From the sequence record MG592671.1: DNA of 64,000 bases. One strand, given 5' to 3'. Below the pieces are notes generated by a model. That model searched no databases, was not told the origin of the DNA, and saw only the letters and a list, made by a program, of their open reading frames with translations. A program made the position numbers and the translations under genes. Positions 40,664-59,153 of the stretch are shown piece by piece. The first letter of the stretch is position 1, and each line of letters begins with the position of its first letter.

Positions 40664-40828
40664 AGATATAGTATATCGAATTTAATACCAACATTACGTG
40701 TGGTCACTCCCACACGTAATGTTACAATAGAGTACACTAAAGATGTAACGTATTCTGCAAATAGTATTTTGTGGAAAGTAGATATTACACTTTTTGAAAA
40801 ACCACATATAAATTACAAGGAGCGTAAT

Positions 40829-43699
40829 ATGTATATTGACGCAATGTTTGATCGTAAGAAGGACTGTATTCGTGTCGCTGAGCGTATTAATGGTAAGAGA
40901 CTTTTACGAGATATTAGGCCAGTATACGAGTTTTATGCAGAAGATCCCCAAGGAACTATTACCTCAGTAACTGGTAAAGCTGTAACTCACCACCGTTTTT
41001 CATCAAATAAGGACATGAAACTAGCCGCAGCGTCATTTAAATCCCAAGGATTGGACGTTTTCGAATCAGATGTAAATGTCCTTAATAAGACACTAGCATA
41101 TGAATATAAGAACGAACCAGCACCAAATCCTAATATTGCGTTCTTCGATATTGAAACTGATTTTGATAAAATACGAGGTTACGCTCCTGTAGATAATCCG
41201 TTCAATAAGATAACTGCTGTATCTTTATATTTGGATTGGAAATCAGAGTTACTGATGTTGGCGTTAAAGCCACAAGCAATGTCACAGGCAGAGGCAGAAT
41301 CCATTGTAGGGGGATTTGATTCCCACGAAGGAACTGTTATTTTATGTCCTGATGAAAAACATATGTTAAATTTATTTTTCCAACTTATTGAAGACGCTGA
41401 CATTCTTTCAGGGTGGAACAGTGAGTTCTATGATATCCCATATATGGTAAATCGAACTGAAATGGTAATGTCAAAAGCTGACACTACTCGTTTTTGTTTA
41501 TGGGGACAGACGCCAAAGCCTAAAACAGTTGAGAAGTTCGGCACTGAGTCACCAACTTATGATTTAGTAGGACGAATCCATATGGATTATCTGGCGTTGT
41601 ATAGAAAACACACATATCAGGAATTGCCATCGTATAAACTAGATGCAATCGGCGAGCGCGAGGTTGGAGAGAACAAGGTTGAGTACGAGCGAACTCTAGA
41701 TCACCTGTACAACTTTGAGTTTGGTAAATTCTTAGAATACGGTTTGCAGGATAGTAAACTGTTAAAACTTCTAAATGACAAGCTAGATTACATTTCACTA
41801 CATAACCAAATGGCACACGATGAATCAGTTTGTATATCAACAACTATGGGATCAGTTGCTCTGATTGACACAGCTATTATCAACGAGATACATACATGGG
41901 GCGAGGTTGTTTTTGATAAAATGATTAAGCCAGAACCAGAGCATGGCGCAGCAGGTGCTTGGGTAGCAGACCCAGTTAAAGGCGTGCACGATTATATTGG
42001 GTGTATTGATTTAAACTCTCTATATCCGTCAGTGCTAAGATCACTAAAGATGTCAACTGAGTCTATTATCGGTCAAGTACGTCATATTTTCACAGATGAG
42101 CATTTAAAATCAGCTATTGACAAGCAACGCTTAGAGTTCAAAGGTCGACCTGAGAACTTCAAACCTAGTTGGACTGAAGCATGGCACGGACTTTTTGCTT
42201 GTATTGAACATACAAAAATTATGAATCAAACTGACGATGATATGATCATTGATCTAGAAGATGGCACAACGTTAGAGATGACTGCATCGGAAATTTATGA
42301 TTTTATCTTTAGTGAAGGGTCGAACATTGTTATTAGTGCTAATGGGACATTATACGACAACACAAAAAGAGGTGCTATCCCAAGCATACTTACACGTTGG
42401 TATCAAGAACGACAGCTAATGCAACGCGCAGTGATGGATTTTACGAGATTATCTGGATTTTCAGAAAATGAAGATGAGCGTGGGATGACTGATGATCAGA
42501 TATCAGTTGTTTTAAATGGATTTAATAGTAAGCAGTGGATAGAACACAATGTTCCAGAATTGACTTTGGAAAAACGAGATGATAATAAGTGGTATGCTAC
42601 TGATGGAAAACTGGCTAAAGTGAAAGCGGCATTCTACAAACAGCAACAACAAATTCGAAAAATCTTGTTGAACTCACTATATGGTGCATTACTTAATAAA
42701 GGGTCTCGATTTTTTGATCAGCGTTTAGGACAATCAGTTACTCTTACTGGGCGTAGTATTACTAAGCACATGGCATGTAAGATCAACGAAGAAATGACTG
42801 GCAACTTTGATTATGTTGGGGGACCAATCGTATACGGTGACACGGATTCAGTGTACTTCAGTGTCCAAAAATATCTAAATGAGCAAAATGATACTACTGC
42901 ACTGTCTAAAGAGGATGTTGTTGATCTTTACTTACAAGTTGCTGAAAATGTTGACGAATCATTTCCAGGATTTATGAATAGTACATTTAATACTGGATTA
43001 GGGAATGGTAAGATTATTGCCGCAGGTCTTGAAATTGCCGGCACTCGTGGACTGTTCTTGAAGAAAAAGCGTTATGGTATTTTGAAATATTGGGAAGACG
43101 GCTTCCGTTTAGATACTGGTGGCAAACCAGGAAAACTAAAGGCTATGGGTATGGAGATTAAACGTTCCGATACTCCTAAGTATATCCAAGATCACCTAAG
43201 TGACGTGTTCACTGATCTATTAGTGGGATCAGAAGCTCCTAAGCTAAAAGAAAAAGTTATGGAGTTTAAGAAGCAGTTTAAGGTGATGGACTCGTGGAGA
43301 AAAGGTGCTCCTAAAACAGTGAAAAACCTAACCAATAGAACTAAAGAATACAGAGATACTGGAAAATGCAAAGTAGGTCACGTACTAGCTAGCATCCATT
43401 GGAACGATTTGAGAAAAATGAATAACGATCACGAATCTCCTGAAATTATTGACGGAACGAAAATAGTAGTGTGTCAGTTAACAACAAACCCTTTAGGTAT
43501 GGATTCAGTTGCGTTTCCAGCCGAAATGATAGATAGGTTACCAGAATGGTATACAACACTGCCATTTGATGTTGGTGGTATGGAAGAAGCCATCTTAACA
43601 AAAAAACTAGATAATTTATTTGGTATTTTAGATATGGATTTAGGAATCTTCGAAGATCCTAACTCAGCAGCAAATAATACAGATTTATTTGACTGGTAG
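40829..43699 (+). CDS. gp43: Family B DNA polymerase (gp43-like)
   Basis: Exo I FFDIETDF, Exo II GWNSEFYDIPY, DLNSLYPS, KILLNSLYG, YGDTDS, KKRY. True start likely ATG 40829 (AAGGAG RBS) rather than GTG 40700. Confidence 0.95.
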   Translation: MYIDAMFDRKKDCIRVAERINGKRLLRDIRPVYEFYAEDPQGTITSVTGKAVTHHRFSSNKDMKLAAASFKSQGLDVFESDVNVLNKTLAYEYKNEPAPNPNIAFFDIETDFDKIRGYAPVDNPFNKITAVSLYLDWKSELLMLALKPQAMSQAEAESIVGGFDSHEGTVILCPDEKHMLNLFFQLIEDADILSGWNSEFYDIPYMVNRTEMVMSKADTTRFCLWGQTPKPKTVEKFGTESPTYDLVGRIHMDYLALYRKHTYQELPSYKLDAIGEREVGENKVEYERTLDHLYNFEFGKFLEYGLQDSKLLKLLNDKLDYISLHNQMAHDESVCISTTMGSVALIDTAIINEIHTWGEVVFDKMIKPEPEHGAAGAWVADPVKGVHDYIGCIDLNSLYPSVLRSLKMSTESIIGQVRHIFTDEHLKSAIDKQRLEFKGRPENFKPSWTEAWHGLFACIEHTKIMNQTDDDMIIDLEDGTTLEMTASEIYDFIFSEGSNIVISANGTLYDNTKRGAIPSILTRWYQERQLMQRAVMDFTRLSGFSENEDERGMTDDQISVVLNGFNSKQWIEHNVPELTLEKRDDNKWYATDGKLAKVKAAFYKQQQQIRKILLNSLYGALLNKGSRFFDQRLGQSVTLTGRSITKHMACKINEEMTGNFDYVGGPIVYGDTDSVYFSVQKYLNEQNDTTALSKEDVVDLYLQVAENVDESFPGFMNSTFNTGLGNGKIIAAGLEIAGTRGLFLKKKRYGILKYWEDGFRLDTGGKPGKLKAMGMEIKRSDTPKYIQDHLSDVFTDLLVGSEAPKLKEKVMEFKKQFKVMDSWRKGAPKTVKNLTNRTKEYRDTGKCKVGHVLASIHWNDLRKMNNDHESPEIIDGTKIVVCQLTTNPLGMDSVAFPAEMIDRLPEWYTTLPFDVGGMEEAILTKKLDNLFGILDMDLGIFEDPNSAANNTDLFDW

Positions 43700-43829
43700 C
43701 GTAATATGCAGCTAAACATTTGGCTGCATTATTTTTGATACGTTATCACGCAAAATGTTATAATTAATTAATAAACATAGCAAGACAAAGTTTTGCTAGA
43801 AAAAAAACTAAACTACAAGGAAATGCCCC

Positions 43830-44549
43830 ATGCAAGATATTCTAAGAGATGTTGTTCGCTCAACTAATGGTTTCGGATTTGAAGTAATTAAAATCACTGC
43901 AACTGATGAAGGTTGTACAATTGAAGCTGTAAACGGCGAACGCACTGTAATTATGAAAGGCAAAACAAAGGCGCCTGTTGCAGAACTAACTGGTACTTTT
44001 GGTATCTCAAACCTAGGCTTTTTGAATGGCATGTTGAATCTCCCAACGTATCAAGAAAGCTCTGCAACTGTTAGTATGTCTACAAATGCTAACAATGAAC
44101 CAGAAGAGATCGTATTTAAGAATGGCCGTTCTAAGTCAGTTTACCGTTTAATGGCAGAACGAGCAATTGTGAAACAGCCAAATTTCAAAGCACCAGCTTG
44201 GGACGTAGAGAGTACCCCAACTGTTGAAGCTGTTAAAACGTTTAAAGCTCACGCAAGTGTTTTTGGAGCTATTTCAGCACGATTCAAGCCTGAAGTACAA
44301 GGTGATGAGCTAGTATTTAATATTGGTGATAGTGCAGCGTCTAACCATAGCGATGTTGTTGTATTTTCAGAAACAGACGCTACTGGACTAAAAGGTGGCT
44401 ATGAATATCCGATTGACAAAGTACAGACTGCTCTAGGCATGTGTGCAAATGCTGATGTTGAACTAAAATTCAGCGAGAAAGGCGTTGCCCAAATTGATGT
44501 TGATACTGGCTTACTTGAGCTAAGTTTTGTGTTTCCTGGCCACGCCTGA
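43830..44549 (+). CDS. Sliding clamp (gp45-like)
   Basis: 239 aa, follows polymerase; FGISNLGFLNGML, KSVYRLMAERAI typical of T4-like clamps. Confidence 0.7.
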   Translation: MQDILRDVVRSTNGFGFEVIKITATDEGCTIEAVNGERTVIMKGKTKAPVAELTGTFGISNLGFLNGMLNLPTYQESSATVSMSTNANNEPEEIVFKNGRSKSVYRLMAERAIVKQPNFKAPAWDVESTPTVEAVKTFKAHASVFGAISARFKPEVQGDELVFNIGDSAASNHSDVVVFSETDATGLKGGYEYPIDKVQTALGMCANADVELKFSEKGVAQIDVDTGLLELSFVFPGHA

Positions 44550-45245
44550 TGGATTGGGGTAAAGATTACTACGGTTTTGTTTACCTCTGGTTTGATGCAA
44601 AAAGAAGAAAATTTTGTGTAGGGTCGCATCACGGCTCTACACAAGACGGATATATCACATCAACAGGTCATATGCCTAGAGCATATAAAAAAAAGACCAC
44701 AAGATTTCAAGCGTCGAATTTTACAGTATAACACTGATATAAATGATTTCTTAGATACTCAAAAATTGGAACAAAATTGGCTAAATTTAATCAAAGATGA
44801 AGAACTAGATTTGTCTGAAAATGCTAATACTGTCCGATATTACAATAGAAAGAAAGCTGCTACTGGTTGTGGTTTTAAAGGAAAACGACATACTAAGGAA
44901 TACTGTGAGACAATGAGTGCTAATAGAACAGGTACTCAAAATCCCATGTATGGTAGAGAGCAAACGGATGACGGACTAGCTGCATTACAGAAGGGTTGGG
45001 ATTCAGAAAATAGCATCAACAAAAGAGGATGTACTGATGAAGAACTATGTAAAGCAGTATGGGGTAGAGCTAAAGGTTGGTTTTTAACTCCTAAAGGATC
45101 ATTTATTTCTTCTCAGTTAGCAGCAGAAATAAATGACGTCCCAGATTATACTATTAGAAAATGGTGTCATAATAGATACGATAAATCTAATTCTAGAACG
45201 ATACTCCCTGAAGATGAAAACTTGTGGGGTTTTAAACCTAAATAG
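44549..45245 (+). pseudogene. GIY-YIG (Seg-like) homing endonuclease split by a +1 frameshift in an A8 run
   Basis: GFVYLW...FCVGSHHGSTQDGYITS; removing one A from 44687-44694 gives AYKKRPQDFKRRILQY...LEQNWL continuing into ORF 44766-45245. Confidence 0.8.
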
Positions 45246-45304
45246 AACAGATTATTTTTTAAGGGACTTGTCAAGTCCCTTTCATTAAGACTATAGGAGC
45301 AAGG

Positions 45305-47095
45305 ATGAAACCAGCAAAGCAAGACGCAGCTAGACTAAAAATACATAACGATTATAGACAGCGTCGTCCGTTAGATAAAGGACTTGAAGCACAAACTGTT
45401 GATCTAACAGTGAATCAAAAAGATTTTGCAGTGCATTTGCCTGCGAGCATGGAGATACCATTCAATATGACTCGCTGGGGTGAGAATGAACAAACAGGCC
45501 AACGTTGTGTTGATTTTATGCAAAAAGATAACGGTGCGTTTTACTATAATTGGTCATTGTACTCCGCTGGTCATGCAAAGAATGTGCCAACCCTAATTAA
45601 GAAAGATTTGTTTATCAACAGGGATCCTGATGGTATCTTGTTTGGAGATTCTGGCGGATTCCAAGCAGCAGTTGGATCAGGAGTGCATGGAGACATGGAT
45701 TGGTCACATATCCCGTCAGTGGATGATTTATGTCAAAAAACACTAGATTGGCTAGAAGCGACATCTAACTATTCAATGATTCTCGATTTACCAACATTTG
45801 TGTTAGGTAAAAATGATAAGATTGTATCTCACGAGCAATGCCTACAGCAGACAATGTATAATATTGAATACTTTCTAGCGCATCGAGAGCCAGGTAAAAC
45901 TAACTTCTTGAATGTACTACAAGGCCTTGATGAGCACGACACTGATGAATGGTATAACGCTGTTAAGAAATTTAATAACCCTGAAACTGTACTAGATCAA
46001 GAATATTACTACATTCCATTAGCACAAATGCCAAACCCCATTGAGCCTAAAGAGGTTGCTAAGCCAGAAAAGCTCTCTGAAAATAGTTCTTTAGCTGAGG
46101 AAGAGAAATTTAAAGAAGATGAGAAAAAGTACAAAAAGTATCGAGTCGAGTTGAATTTATATAAAAAGGCCTTAAAACGCAAACCGGAAACTTTAGCTAG
46201 TATTGTTGATATTGACGGTTTTAAGTACATTAAGGCAAAATCACCATGGGTAAAAAAGTTCGGTTCTAACACAAAGCTAGGAGACCGAGCACTTGAAGGA
46301 TGGGCAATGTCAGGACACATGGTACATAATGTTGATTTAGCGTTACGTCAATTCTGCATTTTATTGCGTGACGGGAACATCGATGATCGACAACACTGGG
46401 TACACATGCTAGGATTAGCAACTATGAAAGCTGCTGTAACGCTAACAGCGATACAGCGTAAGATTCGAACTCTGCCTGGTTGTGAAAACTTCGTCATTAG
46501 TTATGATAGTTCAAGCGCATCACAATTTATGCAGTTTGGCAAGATGATTATCGGAGCATACTCTGATCCAGTATCTAAGGTGGCTACATTCACGCTATGG
46601 AAGCCACCAGCAGACTATGGTTCGTGCGGCTCTAAGCAGTTAATTAAAGATTCATTAGCATACCATGATGCTAATCAGCCTAAGGAAAAGGAACTTAGGA
46701 CTGATTTAAAGAAAAATGAGATACGATTTGAAACTTACGTGATGAATAATATCAGTGTTGGTGATTTATGCTATAAGTTACCCACAGAGCCAGGAAATCG
46801 CCCGTGGGATACAACATCTAATAGTTTTGTTTACTGTCAAAATGTAGAAGCTATTATTCGTAGTTTTCAATGGATTAACGAAATGGCAGATGCTGATAGG
46901 ACAGATGTAGTAGAGCCGGAACTACTTGATTTTAAAAACAGAATCATACATGAGATTTTTTCTGATCCAGATCCAGTACAGGCAGTGACGCACTACCAAA
47001 CTATAATTAGGCCACTGTTCGCAAAAGAGATTATACCTAATAAGTGTAGTTCGCATCACAATGTTCTAAATAACAATGATTTATTTGGGTGGTAA
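45305..47095 (+). CDS. dpdA: tRNA-guanine-transglycosylase-like DNA-modifying enzyme (DpdA, probably DpdA2-type)
   Basis: TGT-fold motifs FGDSGGFQ, MILDLP, NVLQG, GWAMSG, HMLG, SYDSSS; no TGT CxCxxC zinc site seen; clustered with que genes. Confidence 0.8.
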   Translation: MKPAKQDAARLKIHNDYRQRRPLDKGLEAQTVDLTVNQKDFAVHLPASMEIPFNMTRWGENEQTGQRCVDFMQKDNGAFYYNWSLYSAGHAKNVPTLIKKDLFINRDPDGILFGDSGGFQAAVGSGVHGDMDWSHIPSVDDLCQKTLDWLEATSNYSMILDLPTFVLGKNDKIVSHEQCLQQTMYNIEYFLAHREPGKTNFLNVLQGLDEHDTDEWYNAVKKFNNPETVLDQEYYYIPLAQMPNPIEPKEVAKPEKLSENSSLAEEEKFKEDEKKYKKYRVELNLYKKALKRKPETLASIVDIDGFKYIKAKSPWVKKFGSNTKLGDRALEGWAMSGHMVHNVDLALRQFCILLRDGNIDDRQHWVHMLGLATMKAAVTLTAIQRKIRTLPGCENFVISYDSSSASQFMQFGKMIIGAYSDPVSKVATFTLWKPPADYGSCGSKQLIKDSLAYHDANQPKEKELRTDLKKNEIRFETYVMNNISVGDLCYKLPTEPGNRPWDTTSNSFVYCQNVEAIIRSFQWINEMADADRTDVVEPELLDFKNRIIHEIFSDPDPVQAVTHYQTIIRPLFAKEIIPNKCSSHHNVLNNNDLFGW

Positions 47096-47122
47096 TACAC
47101 CCAAAATTAACGGAGAATAAAA

Positions 47123-48235
47123 ATGTTTAACGAATTATTTGATTTCAATGATAGATATCGTAGCACTACATCTGATGAATTAGCAGACCAGATAGATAAG
47201 TATTTGACAACAACTAATAATCCTCCACTTAAGAAATACCAAGTTATGAGTACTGATTATGGTGCTGAATGGGAAATTGCAGACATTGACCGCAGTTGTA
47301 CGTTACCAGAAGGGCTAACTTGGGATGGCAAAGATCAAACAGTAATGAATACTAATGGCATTGCAACTGACCCGCACCTTAACTCTGAAATTAGAACATG
47401 GAATTATGGTGGTGAAATGAACACCAAGCCATGTAACACTATTGATGAAATAGTTGAGTTGTTTAAAACACTACTACGCAATCAACCAGAATGTACTGTT
47501 AATAACTCGTGTAACTTGCATAATCACTATAGGATTCCAGGATTGGACGTGGATGGATTGAAACGCGTCGTATCCTATTATTATGTCTATCGAGATGAAA
47601 TGATTGAAGTATCAGACTATATCCCTACACCTAGCGAGCAAGGGTATAACGCATCAAATTGCTCAACGAGCGATTTAAAGATAGTTGAAGACCGCTACAA
47701 ACATCACACTAAGCCATTAGGTGGGTCGAGACACGGAGATCTTCCAGAGTTTGTTCTGCTGAATAAGCTATTAGCAGAAGATGAAGAGTCATTCCACCAA
47801 GCAAGTGTTATTACACAAAGTGGGGTTGATACTTTAGATGCTAATGCTGCTCGAGCTAGTATTAACACGTGGCAAATGCGTAAATCTCGATCAAAAGAGC
47901 ATGCTGACATTGAATATGAGAAACGACCGTTTGCTGAATCTGGGACTATTGAAATGCGAATGCATCATGGAACAACTGATGTTGAAAAATACAAAAATAG
48001 TATTATTTGGGACATTAACATCTTAAACGCAGCCTTGAACACTGGTGAAACCCCACGTGAGATATTTGATCGTTTATGGGAAGGAAAATCCCAAAAAGAC
48101 GTTCTCCCAACATACATCCCTGTTGATTTAGAAAAATATAAAATCTTCAAGATGACTAAAAATGATGGATCAAACGCACGTAGGTCACTAGTAAAGGCCA
48201 CAATTAATGATCTCAAAAACACAGGCAAAATTTAA
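47123..48235 (+). CDS. Putative amidoligase (COOH-NH2 ligase, glutamine-synthetase-like fold)
   Basis: DYGAEWE, GGEMNTKP, NNSCNLHNHYRIP, SINT, TIEMRMHHGT match the GxExE / E..P / SCxxHxH / TxExR..GT pattern. Confidence 0.75.
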   Translation: MFNELFDFNDRYRSTTSDELADQIDKYLTTTNNPPLKKYQVMSTDYGAEWEIADIDRSCTLPEGLTWDGKDQTVMNTNGIATDPHLNSEIRTWNYGGEMNTKPCNTIDEIVELFKTLLRNQPECTVNNSCNLHNHYRIPGLDVDGLKRVVSYYYVYRDEMIEVSDYIPTPSEQGYNASNCSTSDLKIVEDRYKHHTKPLGGSRHGDLPEFVLLNKLLAEDEESFHQASVITQSGVDTLDANAARASINTWQMRKSRSKEHADIEYEKRPFAESGTIEMRMHHGTTDVEKYKNSIIWDINILNAALNTGETPREIFDRLWEGKSQKDVLPTYIPVDLEKYKIFKMTKNDGSNARRSLVKATINDLKNTGKI

Positions 48236-48297
48236 TTGAGTTGGTAGTCGCCAACTATAATGTTATAATTAAGTAACACAAAACACGGAGTTTAAAA

Positions 48298-49197
48298 ATG
48301 AGTATCGATAAAACTAAAGAACAGGCTAGCAAATTTCTTGGCAATGATGTTGAATATAAAGATCAATACGACAAGAGTTTATTAGTACCTGTTGAAAGAG
48401 TGCATAATCGCACTAAGTACGCTATCGAAGAGAATAACCTGCCGTTTGTAGGGTTTGACACTTGGAATGCTTTTGAAGTATCGTTCCAGTTAAAGAACGG
48501 GTTACCAGTCGCAGCAGTAGCTAAGATTAGCTATCCTTGTAACACCCACAGTATTATTGAATCAAAATCCATTAAGTTATATTTGAACAGTTATAACATG
48601 ACTAAGTTCGACATGACTAAAGGCGAAGCGTTGACGTTTGTAGGAGATCAAATTGCCAAAGATCTAAGTGAGATTTTAGGCGGCGATGTAGATTGTACTT
48701 TACACGTTAATGAGTTTGACGGCCCAGAGCAAGTTTTTGACACAAGTGAATTTACTGATATTGAGCAATTAGTTGACGGTGAGCACATTATTTTTGATCA
48801 ATATAATGAAACACCTGATATTCTAAAGAAAAAGCGCGGGAAAGGCGGATACATTGCAGTCTCTACTAGTTTACTTCGCTCTAATTGTCGTATTACTAAT
48901 CAACCAGATTGGGGTGATGCATATATTATTATGGATGGAGATTCTCTTCCAACTATGGAATCATTACTCCAGTATATTGTGTCTTTCCGTAAGGAATCGC
49001 ACTTCCATGAAGAATGTTGCGAGATGTTATTTAAACGACTTATGGACAAGTTTAATCCTGATGAGCTGATGGTAACTTGCTTATACACACGCCGTGGTGG
49101 CATAGACATTAATCCATCAAGAGCTACACACGAGTATTTGCTTCCGGAATTGCTTGCTGATACAGAGATTTTAACAGCTAAGACTATGCGTCAGTAA
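48298..49197 (+). CDS. queF: preQ0 (7-cyano-7-deazaguanine) reductase, bimodular gammaproteobacterial type
   Basis: IIESKSIKLYLNS, LRSNCRITNQPDWG, HFHEECCE, RRGGIDINP. Confidence 0.95.
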   Translation: MSIDKTKEQASKFLGNDVEYKDQYDKSLLVPVERVHNRTKYAIEENNLPFVGFDTWNAFEVSFQLKNGLPVAAVAKISYPCNTHSIIESKSIKLYLNSYNMTKFDMTKGEALTFVGDQIAKDLSEILGGDVDCTLHVNEFDGPEQVFDTSEFTDIEQLVDGEHIIFDQYNETPDILKKKRGKGGYIAVSTSLLRSNCRITNQPDWGDAYIIMDGDSLPTMESLLQYIVSFRKESHFHEECCEMLFKRLMDKFNPDELMVTCLYTRRGGIDINPSRATHEYLLPELLADTEILTAKTMRQ

Positions 49198-49243
49198 CTA
49201 CTACCTAAGGGGCTAGGTAGGTCCCTTATATTAAGGAGACATT

Positions 49244-49873
49244 ATGTTTAACCTAGAGTACAATATAAAAACATTAAGTTGTTTTTCTTTGTTCCATATA
49301 TTCATTATTGCATTGTCAAACTATGCAGTGCAATTCCCGATTAATTTGTTTGGGTTCCATTCAACATTAGGCGCTTTCACCTTCCCGTTTATCTTTTTAG
49401 CAACTGATCTCACTGTTCGTGTATATGGCGCACAAGCTGCTCGCAAGATAATTACTATAGGCATGCTTCCTGCACTTGTTGTGTCATATATAGTCAGTAT
49501 TGTATTTTTTAATGGCGACTATCAAGGACTTCAGGGATTGTACGAATTTAACACGTTTGTATTCCGTATAGCTCTTGCTAGTTTTGCAGCTTATACAATT
49601 GGACAGGTTTTAGACATTGTAGTATTCAACAAATTACGTGACTTGAAAACATGGTGGGTCGCGCCAGCTTGTTCTAATGTGTTTGGTGCTGCCATTGATA
49701 CGATTGTGTTCTTTAGCATTGCATTTTACATGAGTTCAGATGCATTTATGGCAGCTAACTGGGTAGAAATTGGCATTGTTGACTATTTCATAAAAATTGC
49801 GGTTGCTTTGTTAATGTTCCTTCCGTTATACGGAGTGCTACTAACAGCGATATCGAAGCGTATTCACAAGTAA
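49244..49873 (+). CDS. yhhQ: preQ0/preQ1 transporter
   Basis: Multi-TM; FPFIFLATDLTVRVYG, RIALASFAAY..GQVLDI.VFNKLR, WWVAP..S..FG..IDT. Confidence 0.92.
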   Translation: MFNLEYNIKTLSCFSLFHIFIIALSNYAVQFPINLFGFHSTLGAFTFPFIFLATDLTVRVYGAQAARKIITIGMLPALVVSYIVSIVFFNGDYQGLQGLYEFNTFVFRIALASFAAYTIGQVLDIVVFNKLRDLKTWWVAPACSNVFGAAIDTIVFFSIAFYMSSDAFMAANWVEIGIVDYFIKIAVALLMFLPLYGVLLTAISKRIHK

Positions 49874-49933
49874 TGTTATAATTAAAGTGTAGCCTAGCTA
49901 CACTTTAATAATCTGCGTAATAGCAGCCGGGAC

Positions 49934-49967
49934 AGCGGACCGTAACCCCGCTATATAAATTCAGGAG
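49934..49967 (+). ncRNA. preQ1-I riboswitch-like element (variant) overlapping the queC RBS
   Basis: Stem AGCGG/CCGCT, 9-nt loop ACCGTAACC, A-rich tail ATATAAATTCAGGAG ending in the RBS. Confidence 0.5.
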
Positions 49968-49974
49968 AAAATAA

Positions 49975-50736
49975 ATGAACTTAAAAGAAGCACTTGCTAT
50001 ATTACCAGAAACAAAAAATAATGTTGTATCTGTATTGTCTGGTGGTTTAGACAGCACTATCATGACTTATGTACTTGTCCATAAGTATGGAGCTAGTAAC
50101 GTCTTTGCACTATCATATAACTATGGGCAAAAGCAATCACTTGAGCTAAAGAAAGCTGAAGAAACATGTAACGCTTTGGGAATCCAGCATAAAATCATAG
50201 ATATTGGTTTTTTGGGCGACATTGTATCACCCGTTTGCGCAAACATTGCCACATCTGATGTAGCTATGCCAACCATCCATGAAGTATTAGGTGACCCTCA
50301 ACCACCATCATACGTTCCATACCGAAACTTAATTCTCAATAGTACAGCAATGGCATTTGCTGAAACTAACAACGCATCGTATATTTTTACAGGGTTGCAA
50401 GTTCATGATGAGTACGGCTATTGGGATACATCGCAAAAATTTGTTGATTCATTAAATGCAGTGTCATCATTAAATCGTATGCATAAAATTGAAGTTCGCG
50501 CTCCATTTTCAATGCTATCTAAATATGAGGAAATTAATATTGCTACTGAGTTAGGTAATGTGGATTTTACTAAAACATTAACATGTTATGATCCAAACAA
50601 CTTAGGACATTCATGTGGAGTTTGTCCTAGTTGCTCTGAGCGTATTAAAAACTTTATGCTATCTGGGATTGCTGATCCAATCAATTACTCGATTGATATT
50701 GATTGGGACAGTGGTATCAAACAACATAAAAAATAA
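49975..50736 (+). CDS. queC: 7-cyano-7-deazaguanine synthase
   Basis: VLSGGLDST, SYVPYRNLI, TCY...CGVCPSCSER. Confidence 0.95.
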   Translation: MNLKEALAILPETKNNVVSVLSGGLDSTIMTYVLVHKYGASNVFALSYNYGQKQSLELKKAEETCNALGIQHKIIDIGFLGDIVSPVCANIATSDVAMPTIHEVLGDPQPPSYVPYRNLILNSTAMAFAETNNASYIFTGLQVHDEYGYWDTSQKFVDSLNAVSSLNRMHKIEVRAPFSMLSKYEEINIATELGNVDFTKTLTCYDPNNLGHSCGVCPSCSERIKNFMLSGIADPINYSIDIDWDSGIKQHKK

Positions 50737-50768
50737 AGAATATTTCTAGGCATAAAAAGGAGACTACA

Positions 50769-51383
50769 ATGTGTGGTATATTTGCTTCTAAATCAAAAGA
50801 AAAATTTATTGAGTTAATGGAACTGAATGCGTATAGAGGAACGTTTTCTCATAGTATTGCTTGTGTTGATTTAACAACATCCAGCATTGTAGATCTTATT
50901 AAAAATGTTGGTCCGTTAGATGTCAACTCCATTCCTAATATTCCTAATGTTTACTATATAGGCCATGTGCAGGCACCGACAACGCAGGATGGGATGTGTG
51001 ACGCAAATATACATCCTGCGGTTGAAAACAACACATATATGTGGCATAATGGCATCATAAAAGAGAAATGTATTAGCGAGCTACAAAAAGAAACAGGTAT
51101 AGATAGTAATTGGGATACGCTATTACTACTGTCTTATATCAATAATAATCACAGTTTATCAGAAGTTGATGGAACGTTTGCATGTGTTGTAATCGACAAA
51201 AGTATTAAAATTTTCAGGAATGCAATATCCCCAATGTTTATTGATGATGAGCTCAACCTAAGCTCAGTTAGATTCAAAAACGCAAAACCACTAACACCTA
51301 ATGTTATACACAATATTATTGATAATACCATTGTTGAAACGGATAATCACTTCGTAACTAAAAACAACCCATATAATCTATAA
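50769..51383 (+). CDS. Class II (Ntn) glutamine amidotransferase, stand-alone
   Basis: N-terminal MCGI, NAYRG, GHVQAPT, WHNGII, WDT, DGTFA. Confidence 0.85.
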   Translation: MCGIFASKSKEKFIELMELNAYRGTFSHSIACVDLTTSSIVDLIKNVGPLDVNSIPNIPNVYYIGHVQAPTTQDGMCDANIHPAVENNTYMWHNGIIKEKCISELQKETGIDSNWDTLLLLSYINNNHSLSEVDGTFACVVIDKSIKIFRNAISPMFIDDELNLSSVRFKNAKPLTPNVIHNIIDNTIVETDNHFVTKNNPYNL

Positions 51384-51392
51384 TATCAAGCT

Positions 51393-51425
51393 ATGCGGTA
51401 AGTAATCCCGCATTAAAAAAACTAC
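51393..51425 (+). ncRNA. preQ1-I riboswitch-like aptamer upstream of folE
   Basis: Stem ATGCGG/CCGCAT, loop TAAGTAATC (U first, C last), tail TAAAAAAACTAC as in class I preQ1 aptamers. Confidence 0.65.
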
Positions 51426-51464
51426 ATCCAAAACATATTTTGGATCAAACAAGGAAAAATAAAA

Positions 51465-52331
51465 ATGTGCGATAATCATAAAAGTCAAGATGTACAATTA
51501 ATGGAAAATATTCTCAACGCGCTAGATGGTATCAATCTATCCGCAGCAGTGCAAGACGTATCGTCGTTAACTCCAGGAAATCTAGAAGACGAAAGATTAT
51601 TCATGGAAAAAATGATTAGCATTCTCGATAATGAATCTAAAAAAGCAACTCATGAACGAATTCGAGAGCGCATTCTAGAAGCTGATGCTAAGTTCCATGC
51701 TAATTCTAATATTGCAGAATTTATTAATGATGGTGAAATTGATGAGCTTATTGATGAATGTACTGTAGCATTTGAGAAAGTATTAGATTGTTTGATTATT
51801 GATAGAGAAAATGACCCTAACTCGATGGATACTCCACGACGTTTAGCTAAGATGTACATCTTAGAAACAATGAGCGGTCGATTTACTCCAGCACCTAAAG
51901 TAACAGCATTCCCTAACACGCATACAAACCGATCAGCCGGCTTTAGCGGCCTGTTAGTGGTTAAGACTGAAATCATCTCAATGTGTTCTCATCACCACCA
52001 GCCAGTAAAAGGCACAGTATACACTGGCATCATTCCAGGCGAAACAGTTTTAGGTTTATCAAAATATAGTCGAATTGCGCAGCACTTAGCAAAAAGAGGC
52101 ACGTTACAAGAAGAACTAGCAGAGGATATTGCTCAGAAAGTTATGGAAGAAACTGATTCTCCATCAGTTGCTGTCTATATCGAAGCCACTCATGGTTGTG
52201 TGACACACCGCGGTGTTATGGCGCACGACTCCACTACTCAAACAACAGTAGTACATGGTGAATTTATGTCAGATGGAACTCTTAGAAAGGAATTCCACGA
52301 CAATATCATGTATCAAAAATTAAACAAATAA
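51465..52331 (+). CDS. folE: GTP cyclohydrolase I
   Basis: DTPRRLAKMY, SMCSHHHQP, GLSKYSRI, LQEEL, HGCVTHRGV. Confidence 0.95.
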   Translation: MCDNHKSQDVQLMENILNALDGINLSAAVQDVSSLTPGNLEDERLFMEKMISILDNESKKATHERIRERILEADAKFHANSNIAEFINDGEIDELIDECTVAFEKVLDCLIIDRENDPNSMDTPRRLAKMYILETMSGRFTPAPKVTAFPNTHTNRSAGFSGLLVVKTEIISMCSHHHQPVKGTVYTGIIPGETVLGLSKYSRIAQHLAKRGTLQEELAEDIAQKVMEETDSPSVAVYIEATHGCVTHRGVMAHDSTTQTTVVHGEFMSDGTLRKEFHDNIMYQKLNK

Positions 52332-52334
52332 TTC

Positions 52335-52360
52335 AAAAGCAGCCGAAGCTGCTTTTCTTT
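52335..52360 (+). terminator. Terminator after folE
   Basis: AAAAGCAGC-CGAA-GCTGCTTTTCTTT. Confidence 0.8.
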
Positions 52361-52375
52361 CCCTAGGAGAAAAAT

Positions 52376-53083
52376 ATGTCAACTATCCCAACGTTTATTT
52401 CAGTAATTTTAGATGAAACTGGCTCAATGCGAGGTCAAGAGAAGAACGTGATTGACTCAACAAATGAATACATCACAGGTCACCGTGAAATTCCCGAGTG
52501 TTACTTCAACCTACTAAAGTTTGATGCTTACAATACATGGGTTGCACCAACATTTAATAACCTAAATGAAGCTTTTGACTCCAAGCCAGAACTAGACGTT
52601 CGTGTTCTTTGTGAAAAACAAGCCATCAAAGATGTTGATCTTCTCACAGAACAAGATTATAACCCACGTGGTATGACTAATCTATATGATGCTGTTGGTA
52701 CTGCTGTTACTCAGCTAGAAACACAGGTTGCTAATCTGAAAGAGTCAAATGTTATCTTGGTTATTAATACTGATGGTCAAGAGAACGCTTCAAAAGAGTA
52801 CACTGCTGAGACTATCAAAACTCTTCTAAAAGATAAGCAAGAGAATCATAACTGGCAAGTTATCTTCTTAGGTGCTGATCTAAGTAAAGCTCAATCTTCA
52901 CAGATGTCTGCTTCGATGGGAATTAGTAGTGACATGACATTTAGTTATTCTAAGTGCGCAACACGTTCAGTACATTCAGACTTAACAGCCGCATCAACTT
53001 TATATGCATCAGCAGCAAGTTCTGGCTCAATGTCTAACAATGATATCAAAGCCGCATTCACTAGTATGGACAAGTACAAGTAG
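52376..53083 (+). CDS. von Willebrand factor A domain protein
   Basis: MIDAS ILDETGSM, GMTNLYDAVG, INTDGQENAS, FLGA. Confidence 0.88.
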   Translation: MSTIPTFISVILDETGSMRGQEKNVIDSTNEYITGHREIPECYFNLLKFDAYNTWVAPTFNNLNEAFDSKPELDVRVLCEKQAIKDVDLLTEQDYNPRGMTNLYDAVGTAVTQLETQVANLKESNVILVINTDGQENASKEYTAETIKTLLKDKQENHNWQVIFLGADLSKAQSSQMSASMGISSDMTFSYSKCATRSVHSDLTAASTLYASAASSGSMSNNDIKAAFTSMDKYK

Positions 53084-53084
53084 C

Positions 53085-53420
53085 ATGCCTAACGATAATT
53101 TATTCCGACGGTGGAAAGGGGACTCAACAAGATCCCCTAATCTACAAAAACCTAAAAAAATGGACCTAGATAAAGCATACGATATGGTAGTTGCAGTATT
53201 ATCTGATAAAGAGCGAGTTTACGCAGAGGTTATTGCAGCGAAGCTCAATATTGAACGACATGTAGTAAAGCAAGTGTTCCACAAGTTAAACCTAGAAGGT
53301 AAAATGTCTAAAGCTCAAAAGTGGGGCGGTTGGAGAATGCACACTAGATATGACATGCACGGGGACGATCCAGTGCAATGGGAAGCTAATTGGTATAACG
53401 TTTATACGGATAAGTTCTAG
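53085..53420 (+). CDS. Winged-helix-like DNA-binding protein
   Basis: Start moved to ATG 53085; VYAEVIAAKLNIERHVVKQVFHKLNLEG resembles an HTH. Confidence 0.5.
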   Translation: MPNDNLFRRWKGDSTRSPNLQKPKKMDLDKAYDMVVAVLSDKERVYAEVIAAKLNIERHVVKQVFHKLNLEGKMSKAQKWGGWRMHTRYDMHGDDPVQWEANWYNVYTDKF

Positions 53421-53488
53421 TTAAATGTTATAATAAGTTATACAAAACAGACAGAGTTAGCTCTGTCTTTAATAATATAAGGAACATT

Positions 53489-53794
53489 ATGGGAGTAAGT
53501 TTTTACTCATGTAGTGCTTGTAATGAAGCAGTATATGAAGAATATATTAGATCATGTGAATGTTGTCAAGAAGAGATATGCTCAGATTGTGCAGGGTCAA
53601 GTAGTCAATATGGTGATGATGATCTTATGAATGATGATTATGAGTGGCTAGAACATAATTGCCCGTATTGTAATGGCACTGTGATAACTGACGCTGAGAT
53701 TATCAACTACTTATTTAATCACCAAATTGATCGAGATCGAGAAGAAGTAATGGAAGAATTCCATATCCATAGAACATTGGAGAAAGGTAAATGA
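53489..53794 (+). CDS. Cys-rich (zinc-binding) small protein
   Basis: CSAC, CECC, CSDC, CPYC. Confidence 0.65.
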   Translation: MGVSFYSCSACNEAVYEEYIRSCECCQEEICSDCAGSSSQYGDDDLMNDDYEWLEHNCPYCNGTVITDAEIINYLFNHQIDRDREEVMEEFHIHRTLEKGK

Positions 53795-54690
53795 TTAGGG
53801 AAAAACAATATCGCTATAGTGAGATTTTCGGAGAAACCTTTCAAGGAGAGGGGAATCACACCGGGAAGAATACTTTGTGGCTAAGATGGTTTGGATGTAA
53901 CAAAACCTGCTATCTCTTTGGTCAAGATAAAGAGAATCCCGTTCCTAAAAAAGAAATGTATTACGAAACTATTGATATCACTAATATAACTGATATTCAA
54001 CAGCTACCTATACAAAATATGGGATGTGACAGCTATCATAGTTGGCACCCACGATACCGTCATTTAGCACACAAAGACACAGCCAAAGACTTAGCGCAAA
54101 AGTTAATAGATCTTAATAAGAACGAACATAACCCAGAAGGGCTTTTTATTCATCCTAAATCAGGACAAGATATCCATTTATGCTTTACTGGCGGTGAATC
54201 AATGATGGCTCAAGATGGCATTATTGATGTGCTAAACGCGTTGATTTCCGTTGGTAATTATCCTAAAAATGTAACTATTGAATCTAATGGAACAGTTAAT
54301 CTAAGATCTCATCAAGACTGGACTAACATGTTTAATCAAGACATTACTTTATTTTGGAGCATTTCACCTAAATTAGAATCAGTTAGCGGAGAAGCTTGGG
54401 ATAAATCAATATGCCCGGATACGCTATACGGTTACAAGCAGATTGTTGATAACGGACAGTTGAAATTTGTTTGTGATAATTCAGATGAATCTTGGGAAGA
54501 GATTGAAAAAGCTATTCTTGAATACCAGCAACGTGGGGTTACTTGGCCAATCTGGATTATGCCAGAGGGCGCAGAGCAGTCAGCACAATCAAGACATGAT
54601 GCAGATATTGCAGTAGAAGCAGTCAAGCGCGGATATTACTTTGCATCAAGAGTACATGCTACTGTATTTGGTGCGGTCGCTGGTAAGTAA
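53791..54690 (+). CDS. queE: 7-carboxy-7-deazaguanine synthase (radical SAM)
   Basis: ETFQGEG, RWFGCNKTC...CDSYHSW, CFTGGES, TIESNG, ISPKL, RVHA. Confidence 0.92.
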   Translation: MIREKQYRYSEIFGETFQGEGNHTGKNTLWLRWFGCNKTCYLFGQDKENPVPKKEMYYETIDITNITDIQQLPIQNMGCDSYHSWHPRYRHLAHKDTAKDLAQKLIDLNKNEHNPEGLFIHPKSGQDIHLCFTGGESMMAQDGIIDVLNALISVGNYPKNVTIESNGTVNLRSHQDWTNMFNQDITLFWSISPKLESVSGEAWDKSICPDTLYGYKQIVDNGQLKFVCDNSDESWEEIEKAILEYQQRGVTWPIWIMPEGAEQSAQSRHDADIAVEAVKRGYYFASRVHATVFGAVAGK

Positions 54691-54694
54691 TACT

Positions 54695-54718
54695 AAGGAG
54701 CCTTGGGCTCCTTTTTTT
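54695..54718 (+). terminator. Terminator after queE
   Basis: AAGGAGCC-TTG-GGCTCCTTTTTTT. Confidence 0.85.
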
Positions 54719-54756
54719 GTCTATAAATATTCGTATACTTTTCTGAGGATATAGTT

Positions 54757-55887
54757 ATGACTAGACTTACAAGATCAAATGGAGTTTTCTATTCGAATAT
54801 TCCAGAAAGGGTTGTGTTGGGCCCTAATACAAATAACAAAACAATAACCCCGATTAACCTAATCGGGCAGCAGCACATCTCTTACGGCAAAGCGCAAAAT
54901 GAAAATTACGTGTGGTTAGTTGAAAATTTCGCAAGTTCAACCTCTCCAGATCATATTTTAGGACAAACGTGGTATAAGCCTTCAACAAGTAACACTGGTG
55001 AATTACTCATCGCGCCTAACGATAATATCGGAACATCTGACTGGTTAACCGTACCTGTAATATCGCTCGTGCAAGCAGAGCCTGCTATAAGTGATTCTAT
55101 GCCAGGTCGTATGATTATACAAAATAATAATTCGTTAAAGATGCTCATTAATGGATCATGGAGAACTATCCCGACTAGAGTGTCAGGAGAACAATACACA
55201 GAAAGACTATTAACTATTAGATACGATCCTGAATTATATGCAGAAGGGGAAATAGTTGAAATTAATGACCCTGAATTCAATGGCACTGGTAAACCCACTT
55301 TACTTGTGAACTCAATTAGACACAATGCAAGTTGGAGCAACGTGGCTAGGTTTAACGAAGGTGGGGCGTTTACTTCGTTACTGGATGTTCCAAACGGCCT
55401 AACTGTATCAGGAACTGACGCATTGAGATTTGGCGGTAATTATTTTTGGAATGCTGAGGTCCAAGCAAAAGATGTTAGAGATCCTAGTAAGCAAAAATCA
55501 TGGGAATTGAGTGGTATATTCAATGTTGACTCATCAACAACACAAGTTTCTAATTTACCAACTGACTCATCTAGATACGTCAAGCCTGATCCAAGAATAG
55601 TAAGCGGAACATTAACCAATACTACAGTTATTTTTGATATTGTTAAAACTGTTGAATTAGAAGACGAAGGCACTGAAGATTGGGATGTTAGAGTTATAGC
55701 GGAAACTGAGTTTCCACTATTATCTGATATAACAGATCTTAGCTCTGGAAATATAGATGTTGAGCGTTATATAACGAATGGCGACTTATACGGTATAATG
55801 TTTCAAGGAACCACTAATGAAAGTGCTAATCTTCAATGGTCTATTGCGTTCACAGTGCAAGGAACCCCGAACACGACAATAGCGTAA
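54757..55887 (+). CDS. Late virion structural protein (tail fibre/baseplate-related)
   Basis: LIGQQHISYGKAQNENYVWLVENFAS...GQTWY N-term; TATAAATA at 54722. Confidence 0.6.
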   Translation: MTRLTRSNGVFYSNIPERVVLGPNTNNKTITPINLIGQQHISYGKAQNENYVWLVENFASSTSPDHILGQTWYKPSTSNTGELLIAPNDNIGTSDWLTVPVISLVQAEPAISDSMPGRMIIQNNNSLKMLINGSWRTIPTRVSGEQYTERLLTIRYDPELYAEGEIVEINDPEFNGTGKPTLLVNSIRHNASWSNVARFNEGGAFTSLLDVPNGLTVSGTDALRFGGNYFWNAEVQAKDVRDPSKQKSWELSGIFNVDSSTTQVSNLPTDSSRYVKPDPRIVSGTLTNTTVIFDIVKTVELEDEGTEDWDVRVIAETEFPLLSDITDLSSGNIDVERYITNGDLYGIMFQGTTNESANLQWSIAFTVQGTPNTTIA

Positions 55888-55949
55888 ACACTCATGCAAA
55901 ATGTGTTATATTAATGTACAAATTAATTTAATAGCATTGAGAGTTTATT

Positions 55950-56834
55950 ATGAAAAAATTGTTTATTATAGCCAGCGTTGTTGCTGGCTCTCTTGCCTTA
56001 GTAGGTTGTGGGCAGTCTGAGTCTGAAAAGCAGGCTGAGCATAAGCGACAGATGGAATGTCTTGACATGGGCTACGATAAACACTGTAATGTTATTCGTG
56101 ACCGAGTTAGAGTGCAACCAGTGCGAGCGCCTCAGTTTAACAATATTGAAATTGAGTACGATTACGGAAATGTACATTACGGCCCAGCCATGCCAGGCTC
56201 GTATGTCAATTATTATGGCGATACGCGTTACGGGTATTGGGATATTTTCGGCAACTTTAAATTTTACGACCCGTATAGTACATATGCCACTAATACAAAT
56301 AGTTTCTTACTTGGTGCTGGACTTGGTGGCCTAGTTGCCTACAAGATGAGTAAAACGGATTGGACATCAAAGAACCCGAATGGTTGGACATCAAAGTCTC
56401 GTAAGCTTGAAAAGCCGCGTGATAAAAACGGAAAAGTTATCACAGTCGCAGAAGCGAAAAAACGTGCAGAACAGTCTAAGCGCGATAAAGCTGCTCACGC
56501 TAAGAAGCTAAAAGCGAAAAAAGCTGCTAAGACTAAAGAGCTAAAAGCTAAACAGGCTAAAACTAATGCCAAGAAAGCTGCCAAGAAACCAACAGTTTCA
56601 GAAACTGCTAAGAAAAAGGCAGAATTGAAAAAGAAATTAGCAGATAGACAAGCCGCTAAAACTAACGGCAAGGGCAATAATAAGCTAGGCGGGCAGAAAG
56701 CTGCTGAGAGAAAAATTCAACAAAAAAATCTCTCTGCAACTAAGACTCAACCACGCAGTAAAAAAACAGTTAGTCAGCAAAAACAGTTTAAGGCTAAGTC
56801 TACTTCATCATATAAGTCTAAGAAACAGTACTAA
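55950..56834 (+). CDS. Lipoprotein with Lys/Ala-rich C-terminal half
   Basis: Signal peptide with lipobox LVG|C; C-terminal half dominated by K and A. Confidence 0.75.
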   Translation: MKKLFIIASVVAGSLALVGCGQSESEKQAEHKRQMECLDMGYDKHCNVIRDRVRVQPVRAPQFNNIEIEYDYGNVHYGPAMPGSYVNYYGDTRYGYWDIFGNFKFYDPYSTYATNTNSFLLGAGLGGLVAYKMSKTDWTSKNPNGWTSKSRKLEKPRDKNGKVITVAEAKKRAEQSKRDKAAHAKKLKAKKAAKTKELKAKQAKTNAKKAAKKPTVSETAKKKAELKKKLADRQAAKTNGKGNNKLGGQKAAERKIQQKNLSATKTQPRSKKTVSQQKQFKAKSTSSYKSKKQY

Positions 56835-56896
56835 TCTATCGCCAATATACTAGTATATTGGCTCATTAACAATTAACCTTTAGACAGGAATATACA

Positions 56897-58243: not shown

Positions 58244-58288
58244 GATCTATGGTGCTGCTTAGGCAGCACTTATTAACAAGAGGTGAGT

Positions 58289-58408
58289 ATGCAAAGTAAT
58301 CTAAACTGTGAATGTTGTGCATCTGTAATGCAGACCGACTTTAGTGGTAACGTTTGGTGCACTATTGTTAAAACGGCAGTAACTGTTAAAGGTACGCTAG
58401 ATGAATAA
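58289..58408 (+). CDS. 39-aa Cys-containing small protein (below ORF-track cutoff)
   Basis: GAGGTG RBS; MQSNLNCECCASVMQTDFSGNVWCTIVKTAVTVKGTLDE; overlaps next start. Confidence 0.5.
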   Translation: MQSNLNCECCASVMQTDFSGNVWCTIVKTAVTVKGTLDE

Positions 58409-59024: not shown

Positions 59025-59153
59025 GTGTGATACACTCCTATATTAAATGTTATAATGTAATATAACAAAAAATAAAAGCAAGAATGAAATAGTCAAGATA
59101 GAGAACCCACAGCCAAACGCATGTGGCAATATTTAGAATTAGGAGATAAAAGG

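Follow-up and report, generated by a model that had tools for sequence, protein, structure and literature searches.

What does a carboxylate-amine ligase do in a phage gene cluster that makes a modified guanine? The question is raised by 64,000 nucleotides of Vibrio phage 2.275.O._10N.286.54.E11, a 348,911-bp jumbo phage of Vibrio cyclitrophicus (MG592671.1); this whole stretch is referred to here as the window. Open reading frame (ORF) 469 (47123-48235, ATG start, 370 aa) encodes a predicted carboxylate-amine ligase of the Amidoligase_2 or glutamine synthetase (GS)-like type. It lies between ORF468 (45305-47095, 596 aa), which encodes a divergent TIM-barrel protein resembling tRNA-guanine transglycosylase (TGT) and DpdA, presumed from motif and fold to be a DNA guanine transglycosylase, and a gene for a bimodular QueF (48298-49197; PF14819, 8.9e-33; PF14489, 2.2e-19). 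All genes of the cluster described here (40700-59816) are on the + strand. Bases 45000-53500 of the window are identical (100%) to the terminal part of GenBank MG592671.1, where ORF469 and ORF468 are named NVP2275O_469 and NVP2275O_468 and each is annotated as a 'hypothetical protein'. The reading that we favor, with a probability of roughly 0.5, is that ORF469 acylates, in a reaction predicted to depend on ATP, the aminomethyl nitrogen of dPreQ1, the DNA form of preQ1 (7-aminomethyl-7-deazaguanine), giving an undescribed 7-deazaguanine derivative. The novelty would be a new tailoring enzyme within a known phage system of 7-deazaguanine DNA modification, and the case for it is built wholly on comparative genomics.

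In the pathway that we propose, FolE, QueD, QueE, QueC and QueF, all five of which are encoded in the window, would make preQ1, and the TGT-like ORF468 would swap it for guanine in DNA. ORF469 would then convert a small carboxylic acid into its acyl phosphate, with ATP going to ADP and Pi, and pass the acyl group on to the primary amine of dPreQ1, leaving an amide-linked N-acyl-dPreQ1. We infer that the base is the amine supplier and that the enzyme acts on DNA and not on the free base, and the same applies to all that is said here about the acyl donor; glutamate or another amino acid as the acyl group is a guess. A preliminary description of the window, made from the sequence alone, had pointed to such a decoration of the amine generated by QueF and had remarked that no amidoligase step was described in this pathway. 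A full-text literature search that covered a minority of subscription journals likewise turned up no paper that connects an amidoligase with the dPreQ1/DpdA pathway, and no name for the ORF468 family. To our knowledge, eight 7-deazaguanine derivatives have been found in phage DNA, none of which has an acyl or amino-acid group.

The three central genes are closely spaced. The ORF468 stop codon (TAA, 47093-47095) is followed by a 27-nt spacer and the ORF469 ATG, with a GGAG at 47112-47115, 7 nt 5' of the start, and a consensus scan of the + strand from 45305 to 48298 found no terminator-like site. Given this short spacer and the empty scan, ORF469 is probably co-transcribed with the TGT-like gene. 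The spacer between ORF469 and queF is 62 nt long and contains a promoter-like TTGGTA-17-TATAAT with an extended TG (48241-48269), so that queF and the later genes may start separately from ORF468 and ORF469; shuffled sequence has promoter-like sites at least as often as this region. The QueF itself is a real nitrile reductase, as identified by its ESKSIKLY motif and by Cys197 within SNCRITNQPDW. The gene arrangement reported in the preliminary description, with a ligase 27 nt behind the upstream stop codon, no terminator between them and a genuine queF directly downstream, is correct in all of these respects.

By its motifs and its relatives, ORF469 is an intact, divergent GS-like carboxylate-amine ligase, for which ATP dependence is predicted. 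It has no match in PHROGs, sequence and profile searches of PDB chains gave nothing meaningful, and NCBIfam returned a faint match to glutamate-cysteine ligase. A search of 5.8 billion proteins recovered only 13 close homologues (44-100% identity), all of them on phage-like contigs and one (P0004) with PF12224 (Amidoligase_2) on record. A profile of the close homologues reached 434 cluster representatives at E<=1e-3, mostly of about 300 aa, and the PF12224 cut-off is passed by seven of ten fused relatives (24-43 bits). Pattern scans with the close amidoligase alignment located two loci in IMG/VR and two in JGI metagenomes, with no match in 185,579 genomes. This branch of the Amidoligase_2/GS-like superfamily is seen here in phage and viral contigs only.

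Structural comparison places ORF469 in the same superfamily. Its AlphaFold (AF2) model (pLDDT 89.6, pTM 0.90) matches 33 proteins among the BFVD viral models at E<=1e-3, and most of those with names are annotated as amidoligases. The 45 top PDB matches are almost all gamma-glutamylcysteine synthetase (GCS), GmaS, GS or Dop, albeit at weak scores (E>=7e-3, TM 0.2-0.33). Across 50 diverse relatives the residues E49-x-E51, G96-G97-E98, H133-x-H135, R244, N248 and E277-x-R279 are invariant or nearly so, and E49, E51, E98, H133, H135, R244, E277 and R279 are invariant in the 13 close relatives. The resulting order, E-x-E ... E ... H-x-H ... R ... E-x-R, is what we take to be the arrangement of residues that bind metal, ATP and phosphate in the glutamine synthetase active site. 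ORF469 thus shares with GS, GCS and GmaS a motif pattern and its best PDB fold matches, and in methylamine, which it joins to glutamate, GmaS uses a small analogue of the aminomethyl group. It differs from these enzymes in having no sequence-level match to them and in lacking an extra N-terminal domain, being modelled as a single compact domain. Alignment of the amidoligase profile to E. coli YbdK with hhalign covers the first strand only (E 0.055), and residue equivalence with GS and GCS is therefore by pattern only. The assignment of the gene to the COOH-NH2 ligases, as first proposed, is supported for a divergent member, since relatives pass PF12224 and the model matches viral amidoligases.

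The argument for a DNA base as the substrate comes from the genes around the ligase. We surveyed 100 amidoligase loci, about 95 of them distinct (there were a few duplicate fetches), comprising close homologues, distant representatives and 80 IMG/VR relatives of the type of ligase found in locus L019; neighbouring genes were tagged with iterated profiles. Recognisable DNA-base modification genes are present in 90 of the 100. About 52 loci have the order GAT > amidoligase > LMWPc > AADT together with HMUDK and sometimes TAGT (the GAT type, after its glutamine amidotransferase-like gene; LMWPc is a low-molecular-weight phosphatase), and about 24 have the order AADT > FAD lyase > amidoligase > LMWPc > HMUDK (the FAD type). 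Seven distinct loci, which represent about four separate lineages, are of a QueF type: the window, L007, L008, L012, L019, L025 and L033, with QueF confirmed by Pfam in each. The ligase family also occurs in fusions (P0139, P0168, P0140, P0257, P0136/P0143/P0175 and L022 4452-6527 are examples), with the combinations amidoligase-LMWPc, amidoligase-LMWPc-TAGT, TAGT-amidoligase, GAT-amidoligase and LMWPc-AADT, as well as an amidoligase with a P-loop kinase-like domain.

The QueF-type loci are organised in several ways. The window, L007, L008 and L012, which carry the long forms of the ligase clade termed clade I below, have the order TGT-like gene > amidoligase > ... > QueF, with the ORF468-type gene immediately upstream of the ligase. 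In L019 the order is amidoligase > LMWPc > QueC > FolE > QueF > DpdA ... QueD > QueE, and its DpdA matches that of phage 9g with an E value of 1.7e-27, making it a canonical 9g-type enzyme. In L025 and L033, QueF lies just upstream of the ligase. QueC, QueF and an amidoligase occur together in all four clade-I ORF468 loci versus none of 80 other sampled ORF468 loci. The preliminary description had looked to other genomes for amidoligases accompanied by dpdA or que genes, and this co-occurrence is found, with seven distinct QueF loci, one of which contains a canonical DpdA.

The FAD-type loci provide a connection to chemistry that has been worked out experimentally. In phage Simon, the FAD protein shares 41.6% identity along its full length with gp47 of phage PaMx11, in which the gene order is gp46 (AADT), gp47 (FAD lyase), gp48 (acetyltransferase) and gp49 (kinase). 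Experiments have established that gp47 makes 5-aminomethyl-deoxyuridine (5-aminomethyl-dU), the amine of which is acetylated by gp48 (PMC8989533). The gp48 slot, after the gp47-type lyase and before HMUDK, is taken in the FAD-type loci by the ligase and phosphatase, and no homologue of gp48 was detected in any amidoligase locus surveyed. 5-Aminomethyl-dU and dPreQ1 alike expose an aryl-CH2-NH2 group in the major groove, and for a GS-type ligase placed right behind the enzyme that creates this group, acylation of the amine would be the simplest shared job. The parallel with gp48 lies in this acylation of a base-borne -CH2-NH2 in DNA and in the position of the gene; the two differ in that gp48 has a GNAT fold, uses acetyl-CoA and acts on a pyrimidine, whereas the substrate proposed for ORF469 is a 7-deazapurine.

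A quick IQ-TREE phylogeny of 78 ligase domains agrees with this division by context. Clade I (SH-aLRT 100) contains the window group and a set of short forms. An FAD-lyase clade of 32 rows (SH-aLRT 93) contains all 21 FAD-type ligases, eight of unclear context, and those of L019, L025 and L033, which fall at separate places within it. The GAT clade has 36 rows, of which 35 are GAT-type, and includes none of these three. Context labels on the tree are far more clustered than in shuffles, and at 12 columns whose residues tell the GAT clade from the FAD clade, the ligases of L019, L025 and L033 have the FAD-type residue in 34 of 36 cells. Taken together, the tree and the discriminating columns indicate that ligases placed after an aminomethyl-generating enzyme (a gp47-type lyase or QueF) are of one kind and that the GAT-paired ligases are of another. 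The decoration of an amine suggested in the preliminary description fits well with QueF-associated ligases that nest among those linked to 5-aminomethyl-dU; the part of that description that invoked the GAT together with 7-carboxy-7-deazaguanine (CDG) fares less well, as discussed below.

The gene upstream of ORF469 had been called dpdA, and this needs some qualification. ORF468 has no Pfam, PHROG, NCBIfam or PDB-sequence match, including in profile searches of PDB chains, and its family numbers more than 3,331 relatives, about 500 aa long and lacking a Pfam domain, with at least 592 loci in IMG/VR; one of 30 relatives touched PF01702 (TGT) in Pfam, at E 0.088. In 30 relatives D115-S-G-G-F-Q120 and S399-x-D401 are invariant, as are D161, E331-G332 and H367/G370, and the D-S-G-G-F-Q motif, read as the hallmark of tRNA-guanine transglycosylases, is kept in the family. 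The ORF468 model (pLDDT 84.7) has mouse QTRT1 (9hn7_A) as its top Foldseek match in the PDB (probability 0.97, E 1e-2), the remaining matches being generic TIM barrels. With hhalign, the family profile aligns to E. coli Tgt at E 8e-4, including the QG, GxAxxG, LG and FD strands, and returns nothing against the 9g DpdA. BLAST and tblastn searches with ORF468 found no DpdA3-bearing phage (Cellulophaga, Campylobacter, Flavobacterium). The family alignment has a single invariant cysteine, C489, and no zinc-site cysteine cluster, the TGT zinc motif being, we presume, CxCxxC...H. The earlier name is thus apt as regards TGT-like motif and fold and not as regards membership in a described DpdA family, and ORF468 is best called a divergent, putative DpdA-like transglycosylase of an unnamed family. 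Transfer RNA was considered as a target and set aside, as the window contains no tRNA genes and the gene for the transglycosylase is grouped with those for replication. We note that residues ~235-325 of ORF468 form a Lys/Glu-rich insert of about 90 residues, modelled as a long helix and a small sheet, which is present in the two closest relatives and lacking in most family members.

The wider ORF468 family has a characteristic neighbourhood of its own. In 80 sampled IMG/VR loci (L105-L184) the order is family-B DNA polymerase (polB) > clamp > ORF468-type > GT1-like > FolE > phosphoribosyltransferase (PRTase) > QueD > QueE. The clamp is present, next to the ORF468-type gene, in 78/80, polB in 71/80 and the GT1-like gene in 59/80, and within 10 kb there are Pfam-checked genes for FolE (39/80), QueE (33/80) and QueD (6/80); QueC, QueF, the amidoligase and canonical DpdA were each found in 0/80. 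Phage 9g has the same order of polymerase, clamp and DpdA. With a GT1-like neighbour and no QueC or QueF, the family has the look of a DpdA-like family, as yet undescribed, that works at the level of CDG with a glycosyltransferase. Its member in phage PA5oct, EST35_0316 (L009 7995-9617), lies near QueE, and the way in which PA5oct DNA resists enzymes suggests that its G is modified (PMC12191111), a modification for which the ORF468 family provides a candidate enzyme. The gene 3' of the PA5oct homologue was considered as a possible amidoligase and rejected, as it encodes a weakly GT1-like protein.

Several observations weigh against N-acylation of dPreQ1 by ORF469. PF12224 scores 21.9 bits on ORF469 versus a cut-off of 22, and matches its C-terminal end only. 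The ligases of the window clade have the FAD-type residue at only 3 of the 12 discriminating columns and are otherwise of their own type, and the clade I branch is deep (length 1.48); the link between the window clade and the aminomethyl-type clade is through context, not through shared specificity residues. The four clade-I QueF loci, being one lineage, count as one evolutionary event. The family can also plausibly run in the opposite direction, because in the GAT clade (~52 loci) it is a DNA-borne amino acid that keeps its carboxylate. One T4-like contig with a short-form ligase has no que, HMUDK or AADT gene in the 18 kb upstream and 20 kb downstream. Lastly, tblastn found no LMWPc in the window or in the whole GenBank record, and since this partner is missing, the pathway in this phage may be incomplete or different.

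The phosphatase is otherwise an almost constant companion of the ligase. It is beside or fused to the ligase in 88 of the 100 loci, with the C-x5-R-S loop kept in 88/88, and in 82 of them it is downstream on the same strand with a median gap of -4 nt. It follows the ligase in L007 (5925-6434), L008 (3188-3733) and L012 (3939-4457), and the window counterpart of these genes is the spacer at 48236-48297 only. Such a regular partner with its catalytic loop intact suggests that the small substrate of most relatives brings with it a phosphate that is removed later. A possible model for this logic is found in the capsule of Campylobacter jejuni, although its amidoligase Cj1438, presumably an ATP-grasp enzyme, has a different fold, the phosphatase Cj1435 is of HAD type, and the substrate is a polysaccharide in which the polymer carries the carboxylate. 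There, serinol-P or ethanolamine-P serves as a substrate of the ATP-dependent Cj1438, and the phosphate is afterwards hydrolysed by Cj1435 (PMC11800379).

Of the alternatives to acylation in DNA, the one that survives best, albeit still unlikely, keeps the chemistry and moves it to the free base, so that the preQ1 amine would be acylated first and the acylated base inserted by the divergent ORF468. In all of the clade-I QueF loci the amidoligase directly follows the TGT-like gene, and the long forms of the clade have a common N-terminal extension of about 35 residues, lacking in the short forms, which could be a docking piece; however, the ORF468 family works without an amidoligase in 80/80 other sampled loci, and the L019 ligase is paired with an ordinary 9g-type DpdA. 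Bacterial QueF is known to act on the free base (PMC6884629), and the cluster contains a Vut_1/YhhQ-type base transporter (49244-49873; PF02592, 1.8e-35), found at the same place in L008 and L012 and also conserved in L111. As judged by its similarity to this family of preQ0/preQ1 importers, the phage may import preQ0 or preQ1 besides synthesizing it. On the other hand, 5-aminomethyl-dU arises solely in the polymer (PMC8989533), so that DNA must be the substrate of the clade-II relatives in thymine-modification clusters.

It is also improbable, and slightly more so, that the target is no DNA base but a peptide, a protein, a cell-wall precursor or RNA, the position of ORF469 in a que cluster being incidental. 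Phage Amidoligase_2 genes found with GAT-II and ATP-grasp genes have been proposed as peptidoglycan-modification modules (work cited in PMC11945000). PafA/Dop, a protein ligase/deamidase pair to which there are weak fold matches, also belongs to the superfamily, and in T4-like phages, short-form clade-I amidoligase and LMWPc pairs (L002/L185/L186, L003, L005, L011) come immediately behind RNA ligase 1 and have no base-modification genes close by. Such a target is hard to reconcile with the presence of DNA-base modification genes in nine-tenths of the loci, with amidoligase clades that track the chemistry of the neighbouring enzymes, with the fusion of amidoligase to TAGT and of its LMWPc partner to AADT, and with an association with QueF that arose repeatedly and independently.

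We regard as doubtful, to about the same degree or a little beyond, a ligation in the reverse sense, in which the carboxylate of CDG or dCDG (its DNA form) would be coupled either with ammonia that the GAT supplies or with a possibly phosphorylated amine, to give 7-amido-7-deazaguanine in DNA (dADG) or an N-substituted amide. The preliminary description had included amidation of CDG with the GAT among its options, and the class-II (Ntn) GAT-like gene of the window (50769-51383; weak PF13522; phrog_12378) is indeed located three genes downstream of ORF469. We nevertheless dropped it as a partner of the amidoligase: it is 33-37% identical to a gene beside QueC in the Schizotequatroviruses nt-1, VH7D and phi-Grn1, in which tblastn detected no match to the ORF469 ligase, and it is absent from L008, where FolE directly follows QueC, and from L019. 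By analogy with Gat-QueC fusions, it may instead serve in the formation of archaeosine (G+) or an amidine, in which case more than one deazaguanine is possible in this phage. The ORF468 family usually occurs with FolE, QueD and QueE and no QueC, so that those pathways stop at CDG, but none of the 80 such loci contains an amidoligase, and the QueF present in all seven que-type loci would be pointless if the pathway were tapped at CDG. GAT-clade relatives probably do amidate a DNA-borne carboxylate, whereas the ligases of QueF clusters are never in the GAT clade. Precedents for the chemistry are available in the CDG amides of natural products, formed via the QueC-like RoyL (bioRxiv 10.64898/2026.04.15.718813), and in the phosphorylated amines taken by the C. 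jejuni capsule amidoligase before a phosphatase removes the phosphate (PMC11800379). Very improbable is that ORF469 is a decaying or idle remnant left behind by the loss of its otherwise closely coupled phosphatase, as the gene is intact and full length, keeps all family-invariant residues and has a good ribosome-binding site, and about 12% of other loci also lack LMWPc.

If ORF469 does N-acylate dPreQ1, it has partial counterparts among phage enzymes. DpdM and DpdN decorate the nitrogen of the (d)PreQ1 aminomethyl group with methyl and formyl groups, respectively, in phages with QueF and DpdA (PMC10516641), although they have unrelated folds and cofactors, involve no ATP-dependent ligase and give small products, mdPreQ1 and fdPreQ1. 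CmoY uses ATP to form an amide on a phage DNA base, 5-carboxymethylcytosine (PMC12783734), but is an AMP-forming, asparagine-synthetase-like enzyme for which the DNA carries the carboxylate and glycine gives the amine. Amidoligase and amidotransferase Pfam genes have been noted without a function in thymidine hypermodification contigs (PMC8989533); these phage PF12224 genes belong to the same superfamily as ORF469, and the GAT > amidoligase pairing of about 52 loci here is in keeping with them, whereas ORF469 represents a deep separate clade coupled to a TGT-like gene and QueF, a setting of which we found no description.

More tentatively, and at somewhat less than even odds, we suggest that the amidoligase and LMWPc constitute a portable two-gene module that is placed behind any enzyme exposing an aminomethyl group in the major groove, that the window phage would have the first acylated 7-deazaguanine, and that ORF468 would represent a fifth DpdA-like family, an abundant one found on 592 or more viral contigs, PA5oct among them. 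A new chemical class of 7-deazaguanine DNA bases would result from an ATP-dependent ligase that acts on dPreQ1. A portable module would further imply a whole class of amide-linked bases, possibly with amino acids or hydroxy acids, unseen by mass spectrometry; a single tailoring module would then tie together the hypermodification of purines and pyrimidines, and a Pfam family listed without a function in the 2021 survey of thymidine clusters would acquire one. Bases of this type would be relevant to phage evasion of restriction, CRISPR and modification-dependent nucleases, and to sequencing artefacts, and their enzymes could become tools with which to link groups to DNA. Since the phage is a cultured isolate on V. 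cyclitrophicus, the case lends itself to direct testing. A side result of the analysis is the large family of TGT-like proteins, whose genes are linked to those for the CDG level and for a glycosyltransferase.

The remaining genes of the cluster complete the picture. Upstream of ORF468 are a family-B DNA polymerase gene (40700-43699; phmmer to annotated PA5oct DNA polymerase ORFs, 1e-156 and 6e-57), a gene for a sliding-clamp-like protein (43830-44549; phrog_12062, 6e-55, and weakly phrog_223, a DNA polymerase processivity factor) and an ORF with a NUMOD3 motif that resembles a homing endonuclease (44766-45245). The latter lies between the clamp gene and the TGT-like gene, and in the syntenic region of PA5oct a homing endonuclease splits the polymerase gene. 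Downstream of queF and the transporter gene are QueC (49975-50736; PF06508, 1.6e-50) and, beyond the GAT-like gene, GTP cyclohydrolase I (FolE; 51465-52331; PF01227, 4.9e-38). A VWA-like gene and a winged helix-turn-helix (wHTH) gene, overlapping each other (52376-53420), separate FolE from a QueE-like radical SAM enzyme (53791-54690; phrog_2076, 1e-37, with weak matches to TIGR QueE models). QueD, of the 6-pyruvoyl-tetrahydropterin synthase (PTPS) family, is encoded at 59121-59816 and was identified by its GenBank annotation (NVP2275O_483) and by a phmmer link to the L019 PTPS. Elsewhere, the short-form ligase pairs of clade I are found near Cpn10, Macro, CCA-adding enzyme and NADAR genes. 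In the downstream part of the window there are genes for an Rnl2-type ligase (56897-58243) and for Cpn10 (59826-60110).

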